Positions 49,501-58,383 of a stretch of DNA of 64,000 nucleotides are shown here, piece by piece. The position numbers were made by a program, and so were the translations under genes. Numbering within the stretch: position 1 is the stretch's first letter; each line of letters starts with the position of its first letter. Source of the DNA: Trichosphaerium sp. ATCC 40318 (Eukaryota; Protista; Tubulinea). The DNA is taken from NCBI GenBank assembly GCA_038496445.1, contig JALMLS010000309.1, positions 248,001 through 312,000 of the forward strand. The letters run 5' to 3'. Below the pieces are notes generated by a model. That model worked only from the letters and a program-made list of their open reading frames with translations. It made no database searches and was not told where the DNA came from.

Positions 49501-50192
49501 CATGTACGCCATGCCTAATTAGTCGAGTTTAGCCTTGATTGTAACAAAAGAATTTCACAAACCAGAAACTATGCTAGTCCCTCCAATGCCCTGGCCCTCT
49601 CCTGATATTATCTGGCCTCCCAACATCCCACACTTTGTAAATTGTACGGATAAACTCTCTTTGAATCTGGTTTTACTGACTCATACATTAGTTTGACGCA
49701 TTCAATACAAAGGCAAACAGCGTATTAGATTTTTATGCAAAAATTGACATTTTTAGTACGCAAAAGAAGCATTTAGCCTTCTAAAGTCGGTAATAGCGTA
49801 CTCGTATTGCAAATAACCTTTCCATACGCCGTTAAAGCACTTCAAGCTCTCGTTGTAAACTGTAACTTTCTTCGCTGATTGTACGTTGCCTCCAGGTGCT
49901 GCGTCAGCGTTTACACTATTGTCTACAGGCTTGTTAAACAAATTCCATTGTGTGATCAATTGTTGGCACCTTCGTGTCCAAGTGGCATTCCTCCAGGCTG
50001 AGTTGAGCTATTGTCATTGATGTACCTCAAAAAGTTTCGAAAACCGTCTTTTGCTTTATCTTCTTCTCGCTCTTGCGCTATTTTAGCTTGAATAACATCG
50101 TGAGGAGCTAAGCGTTGCAACCCACTACCCAGAGCCGAAAGCGTGTTAAAAGTGCTTGAAAAGAAACCTTGGTTGACAGGCGGCAATGACAT
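46516..50192 (-). CDS. LSD1/KDM1-family histone demethylase (SWIRM + amine oxidase, no Tower domain) with an extra N-terminal domain
   Basis: SWIRM EREYFP...[18 protein letters not shown]; FAD motifs [25 protein letters not shown]; [10 protein letters not shown]; GFGLLNKV; [13 protein letters not shown]; YFAGEAT...[14 protein letters not shown]. Confidence 0.92.
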
Positions 50193-50305
50193 TTGACACT
50201 AGCCACCTATCAATGTAAAAACGTTATCTTTGGGTGAAAGTAATGTTGTTGCAAGTCAATTTCATTCTGTTTCAACAAACATCCACAACAACTTAAGAAA
50301 TCGCA

Positions 50306-53105
50306 ATGGAAGCGTTTAAACAGTGGCTCAGCGACGAAGTTGAAAAAATCGTTGGATTTCCAGCGAAGGACATTGCAAATTACGTTGTAACACTCGATAC
50401 GCTCGCAGCTCAAAAGGAACACTTGTTGGTACGCGTTTTACAGTATGTTAAAATATTTTAAAACCAATTAATCGCCTCAAGTCGTTTTTGGGAGCTCAGC
50501 CGAAAGTAAACCAACTACTGAAGCAATACGACGCGCGTTACAAAAAATTAAACGTTAGAAAGCCACAAGCGTCTAAACCACAAAACGCGGCTAGCACAAG
50601 CCATAAATCATCTAACCGTGGCTCTACAACAAGAGAAAACCCATGGGGCAAGAAAAAAGAAACAAAGACGCCAGTAGCACAAACACAGCCTTCTAGGCAA
50701 CAAAAGCAGCAACAAAAACCAGAGCAACGTGCAGGTGGCAAAGCAAAGCTGAACGAGAGCGGCGGTGATCAATATTTGGAAGACAAGTACAGCACAGCTC
50801 CTGTCTCGAAGGGCAAACGAAAGAAAGGCGCAAGCGGTACCCCACGTGACACAAAATTTAAGATTTTATTTGTGACGAAAGCAGCACTCTAGTGACGTCT
50901 ACAACTAAAAAACATGCTACACAAACAGAAATTTCACAGAAAATTACAGAGATTTGCGCACAACCCATTGGAACCCAACCTGACACTTCACCTCTAGACA
51001 ATGCAGCATACGTGGTGATTGATGAACGTGATGCTTCAGTACCGTACAAAAGAGTTGACAACGTTCGGATTGTGCGCAAGATTGCAAAGAATAAAGGAGG
51101 AAAGTCAGTTGGCAGGAATCAAAATAAAAAAGATAGCCAACCCCGTAAGCGCAAGCCATGCACCTGCAATGGTAAGCAAGTAAAAAAAAGTTGAAAGTCA
51201 GGATTGTACTAACGTTTCTATTCGTCCATTAGGCATCAGGCATAAACTATTTAACAACTGCCTAAATTGTGGCAAGATAATTTGTGTAGAAGAGGGTCCA
51301 GGTACAACCCTTGTTTCGCCTACAATTGTTTCCTAAGACACCCCCAAAAGGTCCTTGCTTCTTCTGTGGCCATGAAGTGGTAGGTCGTGGTTCAAGCACA
51401 GATTCTATGGTTGCTGGTACAGATGCGGCTGAGGCACACTTGAACAAGTGCGTGATTATATAGCCGCTAACAACCAAGGATGAGTACTAACTGTGTGTTC
51501 AATGTCAGGCTTTTGGAATTTGATCAAAACTCAGTTGAAAGATCTAAACTCTTTGGTAATGCACTTGATTCTATTCTAATGGGTCTTATCTAACGTTGAA
51601 ACAGACGATCAGTCCGATTACTTTGACACAAACAAATGGATGACCCCAGAAGAACGAAATGTACTAAAACAAAAGAAGATAGCGTACGAAAAGGAAAAGG
51701 AAGACAGCAAAAAGCGCATCACCCTGGATTTCGCAAATAAGCGCGTTGTATCTGGTACCTGTTATAACACTGCATGCTCTATCTCTGGCTCACTGTAGAC
51801 TACTTTAGAAGCCAAACCAGCGTACAGTATATCAACGGAAGATTCGTATGGCTCAGACTTCCGCGTCAAACCAAAACCTGGAATGGTACGTACATATATA
51901 TTGATATGATGGATTTGCGCTTATTCGGTAGTCGAGTGGTGGCGCAGAACACACAGACGGAGGGTTTTATCACAACCCTCATTTGGATTTCCATCCAATA
52001 TTTATTCCAGAGGATGACAAGGATACGTCAAAGAAGGACACTGCACCACAAGAAAAGAAAAAGAGTAGAGTACAAACAGGTTACTTTGATGAAGAGAATG
52101 AAGATATGTCGCTCTTCGCAGTCGCCACAAAGTCTGCTGCACTCACAGAAATTGAAACACGTTAGTTACCCCTTTACTCATAGTAGCATATGCTCACCCT
52201 TTCCAATGCCTAGCGGTACCTGGTGTGCGATACTTAAAGGACTATCTTACAGAGAAAGAAGAGATGAAGCTCATAGAAATAGTGGATGGCTCAGAGTGGA
52301 GTGATGGTACCATAATAGACACTGCTATACACTATTTTTTCCACTTGCGAGATGTTTTGCTTATGATTTGTAGCATTGCGTAGAAGGACACAGCAATATG
52401 GATACACCTATGATTACAGCGCGTATGTAACACGTGTGGCTCAAAATGAGCTAAATTTGTCTTTTGTTTGTTTGTGCTAGAGTCGTTGGTAGTGTTAACA
52501 TTTGTTCTTTGTCTTTAGAAGGAAAAACAAATCGAAATCAGTTGATGCTGCCAGATTGTCATCGGCGCAACCAATGCCACTGTGGCTGTCTAGTTTAGCA
52601 AAGCGATTATTCAATGATGGAGTGACACCGCATGTGTCCGATCAGCTCATTATAAACGAATACAAGCCTGGACAAGGGATATCACCTCACATAGATCACA
52701 CCGCCTCATTTTGTGACTTGTACGTGCCTGTTGTGTCGCTTTGTTGCAACTCTCTTACAATTGTTGTGTTTTTAGCATTGTATCAATATCTATGGCTTCT
52801 GGATGTACCATGACGTTTCAAGCGTACGAAGATGAGAGTAAACCACATGACTTGTACCTGGAGCGTCGATCAGCAGTTGTGTTGAGGTATGTGTCCCCAC
52901 CTTGTTTTGATGCCTCAGTTCACCTGCCTCGTAATGTCTAAGCATAAAATCTAGTGGTGAAGGGCGATACGACTGGACACACGCAATCACTGGCGAACAC
53001 AGCGATGTTGTTGATGGCAAATCAATACCACGGTCTCGACGCATTTCTTTAACATTCAGAAAAATAGTGGAGAAGAAGAAAGAACAAGAACAAGACGACT
53101 GGTAA
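50306..53105 (+). CDS. TRIP4/ASC-1/Rqt4-like protein fused to a C-terminal AlkB-family 2OG-Fe(II) dioxygenase
   Basis: PWI-like N-terminus; C2HC5 finger CTCNGIRHKLFNNCLNCGKIICVEEGPGPCFFCG; LLEFDQNS...DDQSDYF; ITLDFANKRV. Then VPGVRYLKDYLTEKEE, RRTQQYGYTYDY, IINEYKPGQGISPHID, WTHAI, RRISLTFR. Confidence 0.85.
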
Positions 53106-53216
53106 CAAACACACTCCTTTCGTTTAAATCTTTTATTTTTTTTGGTGTACATAAAAAGAACAGCGCTTCGCACATACGATGGCACTTTGGGTTTGATTCG
53201 TTGGGGTTGGTTTTGT

Positions 53217-54580
53217 TTATGCTGTTGCATCGTTTCTTGATGAAAATATCAAGTTGCTCTCGTCACAATTTATACCAACCATTGCTTCTCCTAAAAACCA
53301 CTGCATTAACATTCTGCGTTCATATGATAAGTGTGGCGGCGTACCGAGATTTTGACTGATATCAGCCAGGATTTTGGGGTTTTTATAGTGTGTTACAGCC
53401 TGTACCATGGCTTTAGCGCGCTTTTCAGGGTTTCCAGATTTAAAGATGCCAGATCCCACAAAGACACCATCCACACCAAGTTGCATCATCAACGATACAT
53501 CAGCAGGCGTTGCAATACCGCCAGCTGCAAAGTTGACAACAGGGAGGCGACCCAATTCCCTAGTCTTCTGAACGAGTGCCAAAGGCGCCGATATTTCCTT
53601 TGCGAAATGGTATACTTCGTCATCGCTCATAGCCTTCAGTCTGTTTATTTCCTTGTTCACTAGGAGTGCGTCAGTAGGAAGCGAGGGGTTTGTGGTTGGT
53701 GGGTGATAAAAGAAGCAAAACTTAAAGAGTGTGGTAATCAATAACACGTACATTGGCGCGTGTGGCGCACAGCGTTAACAACGTTACCAGTGCCCGCTTC
53801 ACCTTTGGTGCGAATCATGGCGGCACCCTACGACAATGTCAATTAAAGGCGGACAATAAAATGTCCGCATGTTAGCCTCCATTTATTTTGACACTGACCT
53901 CAGCAATGCGGCGTAGGGCTTCGCCCAAGTTTCTACATCCACAAACAAATGGAATCTTAAACTTGTGCTTGTCAACGTGATAAATTTCATCGGCTGGTGT
54001 CAACACTTCAGACTCATCAATGTAGTCCACCTCCAGGCTCTCTAGTATCTGAGCTTCTGCAAAGTGCCCTATACGACACTTGGCCATCACAGGTATCGTC
54101 ACTGCCTCCTGTATCTCTTTTACTTTCTGCACAAAGTGATTAGAAGGCGAGCGCAAAAGACGTAAACGACTTTAACTACTCGTTGGTTTCACGTGTTATT
54201 TTTTGCTGCTTGAAAAGGTAAAGGGACGTGCCATTGGATCAGCCATGCGTGCGACGCCTCCATCCTTCCTGATATCGGCTGGTACGCGTTCTAGCGCCAT
54301 TACAGCGCATGCACCCGCTGCTTCGGCGATTAAGGCTTGTTCCTTGTTAACGACATCCATAATGATGCCTCCCTTTGGCGTGTAAGCGATTATCAAAAAA
54401 GAAAAATGTTCCGAAAATCAAAGTAGACATGGTGACTCTTCACAACTGTAAGAAGCGACCGTTCACTTACTTTTAGCATTTTAGCGAGTCCTGCTTTTAC
54501 TTCCCATGTCCCTGTTTTAGCGGTGCTTGGTGTCGAGCCTATGCGTACGTTAGGGTTGTTGAGTACAAAGACGCACTCAT
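53217..54580 (-). CDS. PDX1: Pyridoxal 5'-phosphate synthase, synthase subunit
   Basis: [85 protein letters not shown]. Confidence 0.98.
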
Positions 54581-55829: not shown

Positions 55830-58383
55830 ATGGCGGATAACGAAGAGTGGGGCGACTACGAAGCTAGCGAGTACCTGGACCCTGAAACGTGCGAACATGG
55901 CTATTTTACAAATTTCGAAAGTCGAACACCCACTAAATCACCGTAGGCCGCTCCCTGGATCAATCAGAGAAGATTTGGACACACCAGATTATAAAGTACG
56001 ATATTTATTGTCAGTGTTTTGCGTATGCTTTAAAACGTTAAACGTTTCATAAAAGGATGACCAAGACAATACGCACAAACCAACTAGAACGCCACCACCA
56101 AAACGTGGTGCACGTGATTTAGCTACGGATCACGTGGCCCAGCCACATTATTATGATGATGACGATGTGCCACCACAACACGTTGATCCTATGCCTGAGC
56201 CGCACGGACAGCCAACAAAACCTAGGAGTAAACGTTATGCGCCCAAGCCTGATCCACAAAGTCCAGGAGCTCAGTACTCGCCTCATGATCCGGACTACCT
56301 TTATGAAGGTACAAATTGGGATACCTTGTAACAATCAAAAAAAAAGTAGAGTGATTTATAACGCAAGTTTCAGAGTTCAGTCCCAGAAGACAACAACCTC
56401 GAGATGGGCCCAGACAACGCGCTCCACTTACGCCCAGTACCAAGTTCCTGCCTACAGTGACTACTCGAGACGAGTATAGGCCCGCACAATCATCGCCTAG
56501 CTATCACGATAGGAACAGCCCTCCAGCACCGTACTATCCAGACGACCCTCCAGACAGACGGAATTACACGCCAACTCAGCACGAGCGCGAACATGAACCT
56601 GACTATGATTATTGGGACGATCCTCCAACACGCAGCCCTCGTCGGGCTGTGAGCACTCCTAATCCGCACATGCCACATAGTCCACATGCTCCTCATAATC
56701 CTCACAGTCCGGCACATCCACGTAGTCCACATACTGTGCCGTACGCCCAAAGAGGATACGCTGATGCTTATGACTACCCATCTCCATCCGCTAAATACCA
56801 ACAGCACCAACCAGTACATAGCCATCATCGCCGCGACACTCGTCCTGTAGCATACACAGAAGGTAGACGGCGTGGCCCTCCATCGAGGGTTGGGAGGTAC
56901 GAACGCCTTGATGCTTTGTTTTCTTTTTCGTTTTTGGAAGAGACTTACAGCCCGCATCCAGGTCACGCATAGCACCGGGAGAAATGAGAAGTCGTATCAT
57001 TGAGGTTGAAGTAAGCATGTTGAGAGATCACGCACATAGTGGAGACAAAAAGGCCCACGACCACTACCTAGACAATAAAATAAGTACGCAAATGTGGTTT
57101 ATTATTTATTCACCGCTTCAAATACCAACTCATTTCTGAACAGAACGTAAAATCCAGGATATGTTCTACCTCCTGGATCCTCACGCTAATATTGACGCGG
57201 TACAGTTTAACGCCTGAGTTAGCTAGTACTTGTGCTTATTGCTAGTAGGTCCTAAATTCGCCTGAGCTAGAAGCACTCCGCATGATGCACGCTGGTCTAT
57301 CTCCGCAAATCATACAACGCATTATTGACAAACAGTTTGGAAACGGTAAACCAAACACTTTCAACAAGGAAGTCCCCCTCGTCCAAGCTCATACTCTATT
57401 AAAAAAGGTAGCGAGATATGGTCTGGCGTAGAATGCGTACTTCAAGAAGAAAATCCAAGAGATTACTCAGAGTACCTGGGGAGGTATTTGTACAAACGGC
57501 ACTGGGAAAGAAAGCATGGTGGCCCCATTGACAGCCCAGCACGCCGTGCACCTCGAGGCACGCCAAGGGGAACACCAAGAGGAAAGGGAAGCCCAAGAGG
57601 AACACCAAGAGGCACACCAAAGGTACCCTTTTGAGAAACGGGATTTGTTCAAAACCTGCTTCATTCCGTACTTGCGCTAATATACGTTCAACTAGTCCAC
57701 CAAAAAGTCAGGTATTAATCCTTACAAATCGCCAGATGGAACGATAGACTTTTCACTTTCAGCAACAGGAGGCTCTGGTAGGGATTTGAGAGTACGCATA
57801 CACTTAAGTTTACTGGGTACGTTGAGAACCTAACAGCTTACAACAGATACCGGCTATTGACGTTTCCCGAGGCCAGAACTATGTACGTGTTGTTGTTGCA
57901 GATATAATTGACTGACTTGTTGTGGGGGTAGATTATGCAGAAAGAAGTTGCTTTCAAAAAGACAAGAGTAACTTCACCCGAAGGTGGTGGCATGGGTGGC
58001 ATGACGTTCTGGCAGCTTCATAGCACGACCCACAATGCGCCATACTACCTACACGATGTACGGTGGATTACCCTCCGCCCATTGCTTTTACTAACTAGTT
58101 CTCAAAAAGGCGTGCTTAAAGTACCTTAAATCGCGTAACCTCGTCGGCAAACGCATGTGGATTCATGGCGAAGTCAAGCGTGTCGATACTATGACTGTAA
58201 AAATTGGTAATCGCTATGGTACGTGCAGTAGGAATCATTCAGCATGACATAAAACTGTAACATTGCACGCTTACAAAATATTTAGATCAACCGCCGAATT
58301 CAAAGGTATTTATAGTATCCATAAACTTTCCAACAAGACCGAGTCTAGTCAAGCAACAACCCCTCGCTGACGACTTGCTGTAA
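55830..58383 (+). CDS. Pro/His/Tyr-rich disordered protein with a C-terminal Atg11/FIP200 Claw-like domain
   Basis: Low-complexity exons; the last three exons splice to FWQLHSTTHNAPYYLHDACLKYLKSRNLVGKRMWIHGEVKRVDTMTVKIGNRYDQPPNSKVFIVSI. Confidence 0.6.

Follow-up and report, generated by a model that had tools for sequence, protein, structure and literature searches.

The ASCC3/Slh1 helicase complex has roles in ribosome quality control and in alkylation repair, and it is partnered by TRIP4/ASC-1 in animals and by Rqt4 in yeast, the latter a protein with neither an ASCH nor an AlkB domain. Among the AlkB-type dioxygenases, those of the ALKBH8 type are known as tRNA hydroxylases and not as repair enzymes. 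In the human complex, the zinc finger of TRIP4 docks on the ASCC3 C-terminal cassette, while a lasso peptide (residues 398-424) positions the ASCH domain (425-578) at the DNA exit (PMC10076317). Human ASCC3 also supplies single-stranded DNA to ALKBH3, and the TRIP4 ASCH domain contacts the DNA leaving ASCC3; binding of ASCC3 by TRIP4 excludes binding by ALKBH3, and vice versa (PMC10076317). In yeast, the Rqt4 zinc finger packs on RecA1 of the Slh1 CTC, near uS10 (PMC9938168). According to a preprint, the ASCH domain of TRIP4 reduces ac4C in tRNA, so that ASCH may itself be an eraser (10.64898/2026.02.27.708502).

The gene analysed here lies in a stretch of 64,000 nucleotides of Trichosphaerium sp. 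ATCC 40318 DNA (the window) and occupies positions 50306-53105 on the + strand, from ATG to TAA. Its product shares the C2HC5 finger, the third domain and two linker motifs (NP..P.F and R[VIL]Q) with animal TRIP4 and yeast Rqt4, probably along with a TRI4_N-like start, and in the region of the finger and third domain its identity to animal TRIP4 is 35-42%. Unlike animal TRIP4, it has no ASCH domain, and an AlkB domain begins at the ASCH position. A frame-consistent model divides the gene into 14 exons and 13 canonical GT-AG introns of 46-96 nt, except that intron 2 measures 161 nt in its RNA-supported form; the version of intron 2 determines whether the protein is 641 or 676 aa long. The exons are as follows.

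50306-50428, + strand: exon 1, putative PWI-like N-terminal domain of TRIP4, weak alone
50482-50836, + strand: exon 2 of the gene model
50998-51171, + strand: exon 3, RNA-supported start; alternative predicted start 50893
51233-51301, + strand: exon 4 of the gene model
51351-51447, + strand: exon 5 of the gene model
51509-51555, + strand: exon 6 of the gene model
51605-51754, + strand: exon 7 of the gene model
51809-51885, + strand: exon 8 of the gene model
51932-52160, + strand: exon 9 of the gene model
52214-52306, + strand: exon 10 of the gene model
52374-52422, + strand: exon 11 of the gene model
52519-52719, + strand: exon 12 of the gene model
52776-52886, + strand: exon 13 of the gene model
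52955-53105, + strand: exon 14 of the gene model

Spliced RNA-derived contigs confirmed 7 of the 13 introns, including the one at the TRIP4/AlkB junction (50429-50481, 51556-51604, 51886-51931, 52161-52213, 52720-52775 and 52887-52954, plus the joint 50836>50998). Four introns bear on the reading of the gene.

50837-50997, + strand: intron 2, 161 nt in RNA; joint 50836>50998 in contig X1, short side of 27 letters
51755-51808, + strand: intron 7, 54 nt, in-frame join, acceptor AG at 51807-51808
52161-52213, + strand: junction intron between TRIP4 linker and AlkB, reading ET-P-VPGVRYL; contig X3 record 9 joins 51943-52160 to 52214-52252, short side of 39 letters
52423-52518, + strand: intron 11, 96 nt, the longest apart from the RNA form of intron 2; only acceptor 52518 keeps the frame

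A shorter version of intron 2 (50837-50892, 56 nt) is in frame and without RNA support, and the 35 extra residues that it yields had no counterpart in the aligned homologues. At intron 11, the junction YDYSA/RKNK agreed with the homologues; the alternatives considered (AGs ending at 52482 and 52492, and an exon beginning at 52491) hit stops when checked by eye. One short RNA fragment, 52500-52642 (X3 and X4), starts inside this intron.

The RNA contigs leave 51728-51826 uncovered, making intron 7 the sole TRIP4-AlkB link without RNA, and the predicted junction here rests on homology and an open frame. Joining donor 51755 to acceptor 51808 gives ...RVVS-E-AKPAY..., where the homologues read RVISEDE and MILAEGN; VVSE thereby matches VISE in homologue P0001 and ILAE in P0151. 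The initial annotation had held that this donor leads to a premature stop and that continuity depends on the donor at 51748. This caveat did not hold, as 51755 is in frame when paired with 51808; the pair 51748/51798 also keeps the frame but was set aside, since the residues at the homologue junctions fit 51755/51808 better.

Continuity is further supported by the homologues. A single-HSP alignment to P0001 covered aa 210-671, from the zinc finger to the end of the AlkB domain, with 43.6% identity (E 1e-121). The model was also collinear with P0151, which is one 619-aa ORF on mRNA-like contigs, while in P0233 and P0229 an unbroken genomic ORF encodes the full set of domains. If intron 7 were retained, a stop at 51796 would leave a TRIP4-only product, and this in-frame stop, together with the stretch 51728-51826 devoid of RNA contigs and the lack of a C-terminal enzymatic domain in yeast Rqt4, is what could be expected if two adjacent genes had been misjoined, one for a short TRIP4 resembling Rqt4 and the other for an independent AlkB starting at the Met in ...ENEDM/SLFAV... 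(around 52106). We consider this highly improbable. Spliced contigs join 51827-51884 to 51931-52094 and 51943-52160 to 52214-52252, the AlkB transcript reaches well upstream of the proposed Met through an open, coding-like frame, and just ~70 nt would be available for a terminator and a promoter. In addition, the same collinear protein is encoded by the uninterrupted ORFs of the homologues, and the junction residues are conserved. The 14-exon frame, the RNA joints and the collinear homologues agree with one continuous TRIP4-AlkB gene, as the initial annotation had proposed, and its in-frame junction intron 52161-52213 was recovered directly in the spliced contig X3 record 9.

The domains encoded downstream of the N-terminus are listed below.

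51159-51379, + strand: C2HC5 zinc finger, interrupted by introns 51172-51232 and 51302-51350 and covering aa 249-285 in the 676-aa model
51555-51750, + strand: TRIP4 third domain (DDQSDYF ... ITLDF; Pfam TRIP4_3rd), with the RNA-confirmed intron 51556-51604
51965-52096, + strand: linker, with NP..(x)..P.F(I/V) at 51965-52006 and S-R-V-Q at 52064-52096, both common to canonical TRIP4
52216-53063, + strand: AlkB-type 2OG/Fe(II) dioxygenase domain, aa 477-663, five exons

Exon 1 alone fell short of the Pfam cut-off for both TRI4_N (E 0.011) and PWI (E 0.019), though it aligned to the N-termini of P0151, P0231 and P0236, the first of which passes TRI4_N at 4e-8. The C2HC5 finger and the DDQSDYF/ITLDF segments recognised earlier were both borne out by Pfam: zf-C2HC5 matched a single 22-aa exon (51235-51300) with E 1.2e-6 in a single-exon search, and TRIP4_3rd (PF23134) matched 51607-51753 with E 1.2e-14 and 54.8 bits, where the cut-off is 27.7. 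All eight zinc ligands are present (C249, C251, H256, C262, C265, C270, C278 and C281), with a spacing near-identical to that of P0001 and animal TRIP4. Compared with animal proteins named 'activating signal cointegrator 1', the TRIP4 part gave E values of 1e-29 to 1e-36, and by these sequence matches it is a true TRIP4 relative.

The frame of the linker was the best by coding log-likelihood (+30.5, against +4.6 and -46.9). In a MAFFT alignment, the R[VIL]Q peptide directly precedes ASCH in seven canonical TRIP4s, whereas here it is AlkB that comes after it, and no Pfam match to ASCH was obtained across the exons of the gene. The alignment shows replacement of ASCH by AlkB, with TRIP4 sequence kept up to the exact ASCH start point; the earlier claim that AlkB stands in place of ASCH is upheld by its start right after this peptide.

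The fusion was found in four named Tubulinea amoebae, mostly with a GH84-like insert separating the TRIP4 and AlkB parts. The long form, comprising zf-C2HC5, TRIP4_3rd, GH84 (NAGidase) and AlkB over 960-1350 aa, is complete in Echinamoeba exundans, Rhizamoeba saxonica and Arcella intermedia, while a Flabellula baltica transcript (P0006) with an apparently cut 5' end holds GH84 and AlkB only. The amoeba proteins do not retain the catalytic Asp-Asp pair of GH84. The TRIP4 and AlkB parts of the window protein are collinear with and homologous to those of the long form, and the AlkB domains fall in one clade, but GH84 is missing: approximately 20 residues stand in place of the ~600-residue insert (an alignment gap of ~600 columns), and NAGidase gave no Pfam match on the linker exons. 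The possibility that S-R-V-Q-T-G-Y-F is a leftover of the first GH84 strand was rejected, because in the long forms the motif precedes the GH84 start (RGVVEGF) by ~40 residues and because canonical TRIP4s have it too. Judged from these alignments, the fusion is a conserved family in Tubulinea amoebae.

A search of the ESM Atlas with a single exon returned nothing useful, but the Atlas does contain a cluster of 54 proteins, mostly from Streptophyta, with the zf-C2HC5, TRIP4_3rd and AlkB Pfam families. These plant proteins have the same three families as the window protein and a similar length, and the language-model similarity of the cluster was 0.94 to P0001 (202 of 256 features in common) and 0.91 to P0151. 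The same fusion family probably exists in plants too, a link drawn from domain set and Atlas scores. With the TRIP4 part of P0001 as query, a word-limited search gave only ASCH-type TRIP4s, mostly from animals. Literature searches on TRIP4/Rqt4 with AlkB, on zf-C2HC5 with 2OG-FeII_Oxy_2 and on O-GlcNAcase with AlkB and Amoebozoa turned up no paper in which the architecture is described or interpreted. The only mention found is one sentence of domain annotation in a Ginkgo survey, which reports zf-C2HC5 for GbALKBH1B (665 aa). The initial annotation had presented the fusion as new, while naming a widespread architecture as an argument to the contrary; its occurrence in amoebae, the plant cluster and Ginkgo weakens the claim of a singular fusion. 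The fusion is widespread, though described only as a domain annotation in the literature found, where no paper connects it with TRIP4/Rqt4.

The AlkB domain gave 2OG-FeII_Oxy_2 matches on three exons searched singly (E 5.8e-5, 0.014 and 0.025). Its motifs, reported earlier as intact, are so at the expected places: N-E-Y at 52655-52663, H-I-D at 52688-52696, W-T-H-A-I at 52974-52988 and R-S-R-R-I-S-L-T-F-R-K at 53031-53063. The metal triad and the 2OG pair (H580, D582, H636, R656 and R662) are present, and the triad and arginine columns were invariant across an alignment of 30 relatives. Going by its ligand residues, the domain is predicted to be catalytically competent.

To assign the domain to a type, structure prediction and family searches were carried out with P0001 and relatives, while the window protein, whose AlkB domain is 53% identical to that of P0001, was searched exon by exon. 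Against the PDB, the family profile scored 160 bits for ALKBH8 (4.6e-46) and 24 bits for ALKBH3, with all others at or below 84. The AlphaFold2 model of P0001:285-479 (pLDDT 94.7, pTM 0.90) displays a double-stranded beta-helix fold with the N-terminal extension of the AlkB type, and Foldseek ranked ALKBH8 (3tht, E 8.5e-18), ALKBH6 and Ofd2 as its top matches. ALKBH8, the tRNA mcm5U hydroxylase (PDB 3thp/3tht), is the best profile and fold match and has the same H-x-D...H and R...R ligands. In a quick-search tree with a midpoint root only, the fusion proteins formed their own clade (SH-aLRT 91), which grouped with the ALKBH8 clade, while the methyltransferase-bearing ALKBH8s formed a clade (SH-aLRT 99) without any fusion protein. 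To the question raised initially, whether the domain is ALKBH8-like or viral/bacterial, the sequence comparisons answer that it is of the ALKBH8 type and not of the ALKBH3 type, in a separate clade beside the ALKBH8s. Small bacterial and giant-virus proteins were among the nearest AlkB relatives.

ALKBH8 stands well ahead of all other solved relatives in the profile comparison (160 bits, with no other above 84), the fold searches by Foldseek and in the Atlas agree, and the two clades group together. On these grounds, the AlkB domain might be a tRNA wobble-uridine hydroxylase that TRIP4 brings to tRNA on ribosomes or to the ASC-1 complex, for modification and not for repair. We give this an appreciable but minor chance, as the protein lies outside the methyltransferase-bearing ALKBH8 clade (SH-aLRT 99) and is devoid of the RRM and the SAM methyltransferase (Trm9-like) domain that ALKBH8 uses, neither of which was detected by Pfam in the window exons or the fusion homologues; moreover, the nearest bacterial and giant-virus relatives can hardly all be mcm5U hydroxylases. 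A protein target, such as a subunit of the complex or a ribosomal protein close to uS10, is improbable. Such targets have been proposed for ALKBH4, ALKBH7 and Ofd2-type enzymes, and the C-terminal exon alone matched ALKBH7 and Ofd2 best; the GH84 domain of the long-form relatives, being of the protein O-GlcNAcase type, could then read or remove a protein modification. The whole-domain profile, on the other hand, favours ALKBH8 by ~75 bits, and with the Asp-Asp pair lost in the amoeba proteins GH84 says little about chemistry.

The reading we favour, with moderate confidence, is that of a TRIP4-family protein with ASCH swapped for AlkB, which would dock on ASCC3/Slh1 and oxidatively demodify the threaded strand. 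From the conserved docking elements, the zinc finger and the peptide following it would bind the ASCC3/Slh1 C-terminal cassette as in human and yeast, placing AlkB at the ASCH position beside the nucleic-acid exit. There it could oxidatively strip a base modification, be it m1A/m3C-type alkyl damage or a uridine side-chain hydroxylation, from the single strand threaded by the helicase, which would most likely be RNA at stalled or collided ribosomes. Repair at collided ribosomes, the Rosetta-stone function proposed initially, is a putative role of the fusion; the ALKBH8-type identity counts against the repair-enzyme part of this mechanism.

A role on nuclear DNA, in which the ASC-1 complex unwinds modified or alkylated DNA for the fused AlkB to repair or demethylate without involvement of ribosomes, appears unlikely. 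ASCC3 does feed single-stranded DNA to ALKBH3 with the TRIP4 ASCH touching the exiting DNA (PMC10076317), and the Ginkgo homologue is nuclear according to the survey, by prediction only, yet RNA is the substrate of ALKBH8-type relatives. Under the favoured docking of AlkB on the helicase, the fusion would be an in-cis counterpart of the human ASCC3-ALKBH3 partnership: an AlkB-type enzyme would be tied to an ASCC3-type helicase in both, covalently and via TRIP4 in the fusion. This parallel, drawn initially, holds as a functional analogy and not as homology, because the domain is ALKBH8-type (160 bits, against 24 for ALKBH3) and no ALKBH3 orthologue. As ALKBH3 and TRIP4 compete for ASCC3, the chimera may be seen as merging two alternatives for binding it.

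It is tentatively suggested that the TRIP4/Rqt4 adaptor of Tubulinea, and probably that of plants, bears its own AlkB at the ASCH site and demodifies or repairs RNA from collided ribosomes as it exits the helicase. If true, oxidative dealkylation would be an old, recurrent function of ASC-1/RQT, with human ASCC3-ALKBH3 as its split version, and ASCH and AlkB could be interchangeable 'eraser' modules on one scaffold. Since evolution appears to have exchanged ASCH for a known type of base-modification eraser, the fusion also bears on the function of ASCH in animal TRIP4. Among the signs from which a functional partnership can be predicted, domain fusion is one of the better ones, and a TRIP4-AlkB chimera conserved in two groups that are far apart among eukaryotes would lend independent support to a demodification link between the ASCC3/Slh1 complex and AlkB. 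The plant and amoeba proteins offer a tractable test system; plant surveys class such proteins as 'ALKBH1' and as putative m6A erasers, and the ALKBH1B-type label overlooks the TRIP4 half.

The TRIP4-AlkB gene was modelled by three-frame translation of 50306-53110 and joining of frame-consistent GT-AG sites, which gave a first coding sequence of 14 exons (ATG at 50306 to TAA at 53103-53105, 676 aa). The introns of this first model measured 46-96 nt, all ended in AG and most began with GTA(C/A/T), several contained CTAAC-like branch sites, and G+C was 44.1% in exons vs 38.4% in introns. A tblastn search of the 64-kb window with the model revealed no second copy. The borders of the gene are tight, with neighbours approximately 110 nt away on either side:

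49956-50192, minus strand: divergent ORF without a Pfam match, its start 113 nt ahead of the ATG of TRIP4-AlkB
53217-54100, minus strand: convergent SOR/SNZ gene (PDX1, pyridoxal-phosphate synthase), ending near 53217, ~110 nt past the stop codon

As the divergent ORF starts only this short distance upstream, it and the TRIP4-AlkB gene probably have a common, very short bidirectional promoter region. At 56457-56972 (+) lies a 171-aa ORF of low complexity with many Pro, His, Asp and Tyr residues, and a 161-aa ORF of the other strand overlaps it.

Contigs assembled from four public runs under the same species label were placed on 50200-53200 (3001 letters). Those at the locus carry spliced joints and thus derive from RNA:

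50428 to 50482, plus strand: spliced joint, RNA contig
50836 to 50998, plus strand: spliced joint (intron 2), RNA contig
51555 to 51605, plus strand: spliced joint, RNA contig
51885 to 51932, plus strand: spliced joint, RNA contig
52160 to 52214, plus strand: spliced joint (TRIP4/AlkB junction intron), record 9 of run X3, 51943-52160 joined to 52214-52252
52719 to 52776, plus strand: spliced joint, RNA contig
52886 to 52955, plus strand: spliced joint, RNA contig

The joints cover 7 of the 13 introns, with introns 3, 4, 5, 7, 10 and 11 lying outside the RNA coverage. The junction intron proposed in the initial annotation (52161-52213) is removed in the X3 contig. Intron 2 measured 161 nt (50837-50997) in the sole RNA contig over it, compared to the 56 nt first predicted. 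Both of its acceptors, ending at 50892 and 50997, are in frame, and the RNA uses the distal one, giving an RNA-supported protein of 641 aa; the 35 residues present only in the longer model are of low complexity and, in the alignment, were without counterpart in any homologue. The two acceptors could reflect alternative splicing, or the first prediction could simply be wrong. An adapter-flanked RNA fragment at 52500-52642, present in both X3 and X4 (runs of one sample), reaches 19 nt into intron 11 (52423-52518), retention of which breaks the frame. Since the alternative acceptors that were checked by eye all lose the frame, the fragment suggests an unspliced or intron-retaining molecule. Towards the 3' end, RNA contigs of 1.2-1.4 kb that contain the final three exons of AlkB continue without a break into the PDX1 gene, meaning that the two transcripts overlap or meet at their 3' ends, and the high depth found there (23-47) probably belongs to PDX1. 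The RNA contigs differ from the window by five single bases, all exonic (50778, 51109, 52027, 52045 and 52547), and by a 2-nt deletion at 53109, just past the stop codon, which are likely strain or allele differences.

Continuity of the reading frame had been thought to depend on the intron 7 donor at 51748, with a donor at 51755 leading to a premature stop. This concern dissolved, as donor 51755 keeps the frame when joined to an acceptor ending at 51808 and yields ...K-R-V-V-S-E-A-K-P-A-Y..., where relatives have R-R-V-I-S-E-D-E and R-M-I-L-A-E-G-N. The original pairing of 51748 with acceptor 51798 is in frame as well, but 51755/51808 fits better because its joint residues resemble those of the relatives. 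Judged from the sequence, continuity would hold with either donor, the joint itself lying outside the RNA coverage. The 101 codons from intron 7 to AlkB are open in this frame and one other only, and the codon-usage log-likelihood of this linker was +30.5 bits vs +4.6 and -46.9 in the other frames.

Pfam, run on individual exons, matched zf-C2HC5 (E 1.2e-6) and TRIP4_3rd (E 1.2e-14) on single exons and 2OG-FeII_Oxy_2 on three (E 5.8e-5, 0.014 and 0.025), while exon 1 gave sub-threshold matches to both TRI4_N and PWI. All eight zinc ligands are present (51159-51379), as are the AlkB motifs N-x-Y (52655-52663), H-x-D (52688-52696), the distal His (52974-52988) and R..R..T.R (53031-53063), the AlkB motifs lying where they had first been read.

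In an alignment of 30 AlkB domains of the family (A1), the metal triad and the 2OG arginines were invariant. Scored against PDB sequences, the A1 profile matched ALKBH8 (160 bits, E 4.6e-46), Ofd2 and NMAD-1 (84 bits each), ALKBH6 (77 bits), ALKBH7 (63 bits), ALKBH5 (53 bits), E. coli AlkB (42 bits), and ALKBH3 and ALKBH2 (24 bits each). Structure prediction and several searches used homologues rather than the window's own spliced protein: AlphaFold2 modelled residues 285-479 of homologue P0001 with A1 at pLDDT 94.7 and pTM 0.90, and the best Foldseek match of this model was ALKBH8 (3tht, E 8.5e-18, TM 0.79). An ESM Atlas fold search returned clusters of ALKBH8 type together with two further AlkB clusters, a small one from Bacteroidota and one from giant viruses. 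In a maximum-likelihood tree of 146 domains, built by a quick search with SH-aLRT as the only support and a midpoint root, a single group (91) takes in all fusion proteins along with a few short fragments from metatranscriptomes, beside and outside the clade of methyltransferase-bearing ALKBH8s (99*); the partner of the window domain is P0001, and the pair adjoins the long forms of Rhizamoeba and Flabellula (84). Profile and fold point to the ALKBH8 type, and the tree to a group of its own beside the ALKBH8 clade. ALKBH8-like tRNA uridine hydroxylation is one candidate for the reaction.

When the 66-aa AlkB core exon served as query in an exhaustive HMMER search, the list was headed by long proteins with a C-terminal AlkB match. 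By Pfam, the short form P0001 (479 aa) carries zf-C2HC5, TRIP4_3rd and AlkB, and the short form P0151 (619 aa) has TRI4_N in addition. The long forms P0008, P0010, P0011 and P0236 combine zf-C2HC5, TRIP4_3rd, NAGidase (GH84) and AlkB, as do P0229-P0233 in the precomputed Pfam list, where P0234 shows the same families minus the zinc-finger match. P0151 is one ORF on two mRNA-like contigs of ~1.9 kb each. P0233 and P0229 are each encoded by an uninterrupted ORF (3.75 and 3.46 kb) on genomic contigs of 90 and 181 kb, respectively, among eukaryote-type genes, and the fusion in these organisms is therefore independent of any splicing model. The window model aligned to P0001 in one HSP (aa 210-671, 43.6% identity, E 1e-121) and to P0151 at 33% identity (aa 244-669), with all exon junctions in collinear, conserved sequence. 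Wherever EukProt names the source, it is an amoeba of the Tubulinea: Echinamoeba exundans, Rhizamoeba saxonica, Arcella intermedia and Flabellula baltica. At the sequence level the fusion is real and conserved, and collinear homologues, uninterrupted ORFs and the single HSP agree with the one fused gene originally proposed. Two TRIP4-like proteins, P0248 (518 aa, Logan; ranked second among the matches to the TRIP4 part of the window protein) and P0239 (419 aa), keep the zinc finger and third domain, while Pfam recognised neither ASCH nor AlkB at their C-termini; they could be truncated models or a further C-terminal variant.

Most amoeba relatives carry a GH84 (O-GlcNAcase-type) domain of ~300 residues between the TRIP4 part and AlkB (P0008, P0010, P0229-P0234 and P0236; for example at L004:2001-5750 and L005:2001-5456), whereas the window protein has ~20 residues at this place. 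The insert matches bacterial and human O-GlcNAcases. At the site of the catalytic Asp-Asp pair, which is not kept, the amoeba proteins have N-E, S-G-E, D-M-D, E-E-D and similar, and the insert may therefore be a non-catalytic, inactive, altered or repurposed module. No description of the four-domain combination was found in the literature. By placing the window domain and P0001 beside long forms, those of Rhizamoeba and Flabellula, the tree faintly hints at loss of GH84 in the window's lineage.

The fusion is not singular: the same domain set occurs in Tubulinea amoebae and in a mostly plant cluster. ESM Atlas language-model searches with P0151 (score 0.91, 194/256 features shared) and P0001 (0.94, 202/256) gave the same first match, a cluster of 54 with a 626-aa representative, in which 2OG-FeII_Oxy_2 is found in 100%, TRIP4_3rd in 96% and zf-C2HC5 in 56%. 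All members are eukaryotic, most from Streptophyta. A 2026 survey of m6A genes in Ginkgo lists GbALKBH1B (evm.model.chr4.229, 665 aa) with AlkB and zf-C2HC5, without comment (PMC13296198). A common origin of the plant proteins and the amoeba family is likely. No paper recognising these proteins as TRIP4/Rqt4 chimeras or discussing their function was found in a search that left out most subscription journals. The window gene is an amoebozoan, GH84-less member of a functionally unstudied architecture already in databases for plants.

Searched with the TRIP4 part, animal proteins named 'activating signal cointegrator 1' matched with E values of 1e-29 to 1e-36, and the finger and third domain of P0001 as query matched almost exclusively ASCH-bearing TRIP4s. 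When the fusion proteins were aligned with seven canonical TRIP4s (the human protein not among them), similarity spanned the zinc finger, the third domain, and the NP..P.F(V/I) and R[VIL]Q motifs. In canonical TRIP4s the ASCH core (C-L-S-M-H-Q-P-W-A-S-L-L) follows R[VIL]Q within ~15 residues; in the fusion family GH84 and AlkB follow, and in the window protein AlkB alone. By this alignment ASCH is replaced by AlkB, with no ASCH alongside, as had been proposed. The earlier interpretation is supported in part: the fusion in the place of ASCH is a true one, but it is not unique, and its AlkB is of ALKBH8 rather than ALKBH3 type (160 vs 24 bits).

Human TRIP4 is anchored through its zinc finger on the C-terminal cassette of ASCC3; residues 398-424 form a lasso, the final stretch of which occupies a groove and supports ASCH (425-578) where the nucleic acid presumably exits; and binding of ASCC3 by TRIP4 and by ALKBH3 is mutually exclusive (PMC10076317). 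The yeast Rqt4 finger packs on Slh1 CTC RecA1 near uS10 (PMC9938168). The retained NP..P.F and R[VIL]Q motifs would be lasso equivalents, since they sit just upstream of the ASCH position. With this architecture, conserved intact catalytic residues and retained TRIP4 docking elements, the protein may dock on ASCC3/Slh1 like TRIP4/Rqt4 and hold AlkB, in the place of ASCH, against the single strand as it emerges from the helicase. One candidate substrate would be mRNA or rRNA at stalled ribosomes that carries alkyl damage (m1A/m3C, for example); another, if the ASC-1 role is nuclear, would be DNA with lesions, and a protein substrate is the least likely. As a Rosetta stone, the fusion would plausibly tie AlkB chemistry to the ASCC3/RQT machinery, a link that is conserved and directly testable. 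According to a preprint that is not peer reviewed, the human TRIP4 ASCH domain lowers tRNA ac4C (10.64898/2026.02.27.708502); if this holds, the swap of ASCH for AlkB would exchange one eraser module for another.
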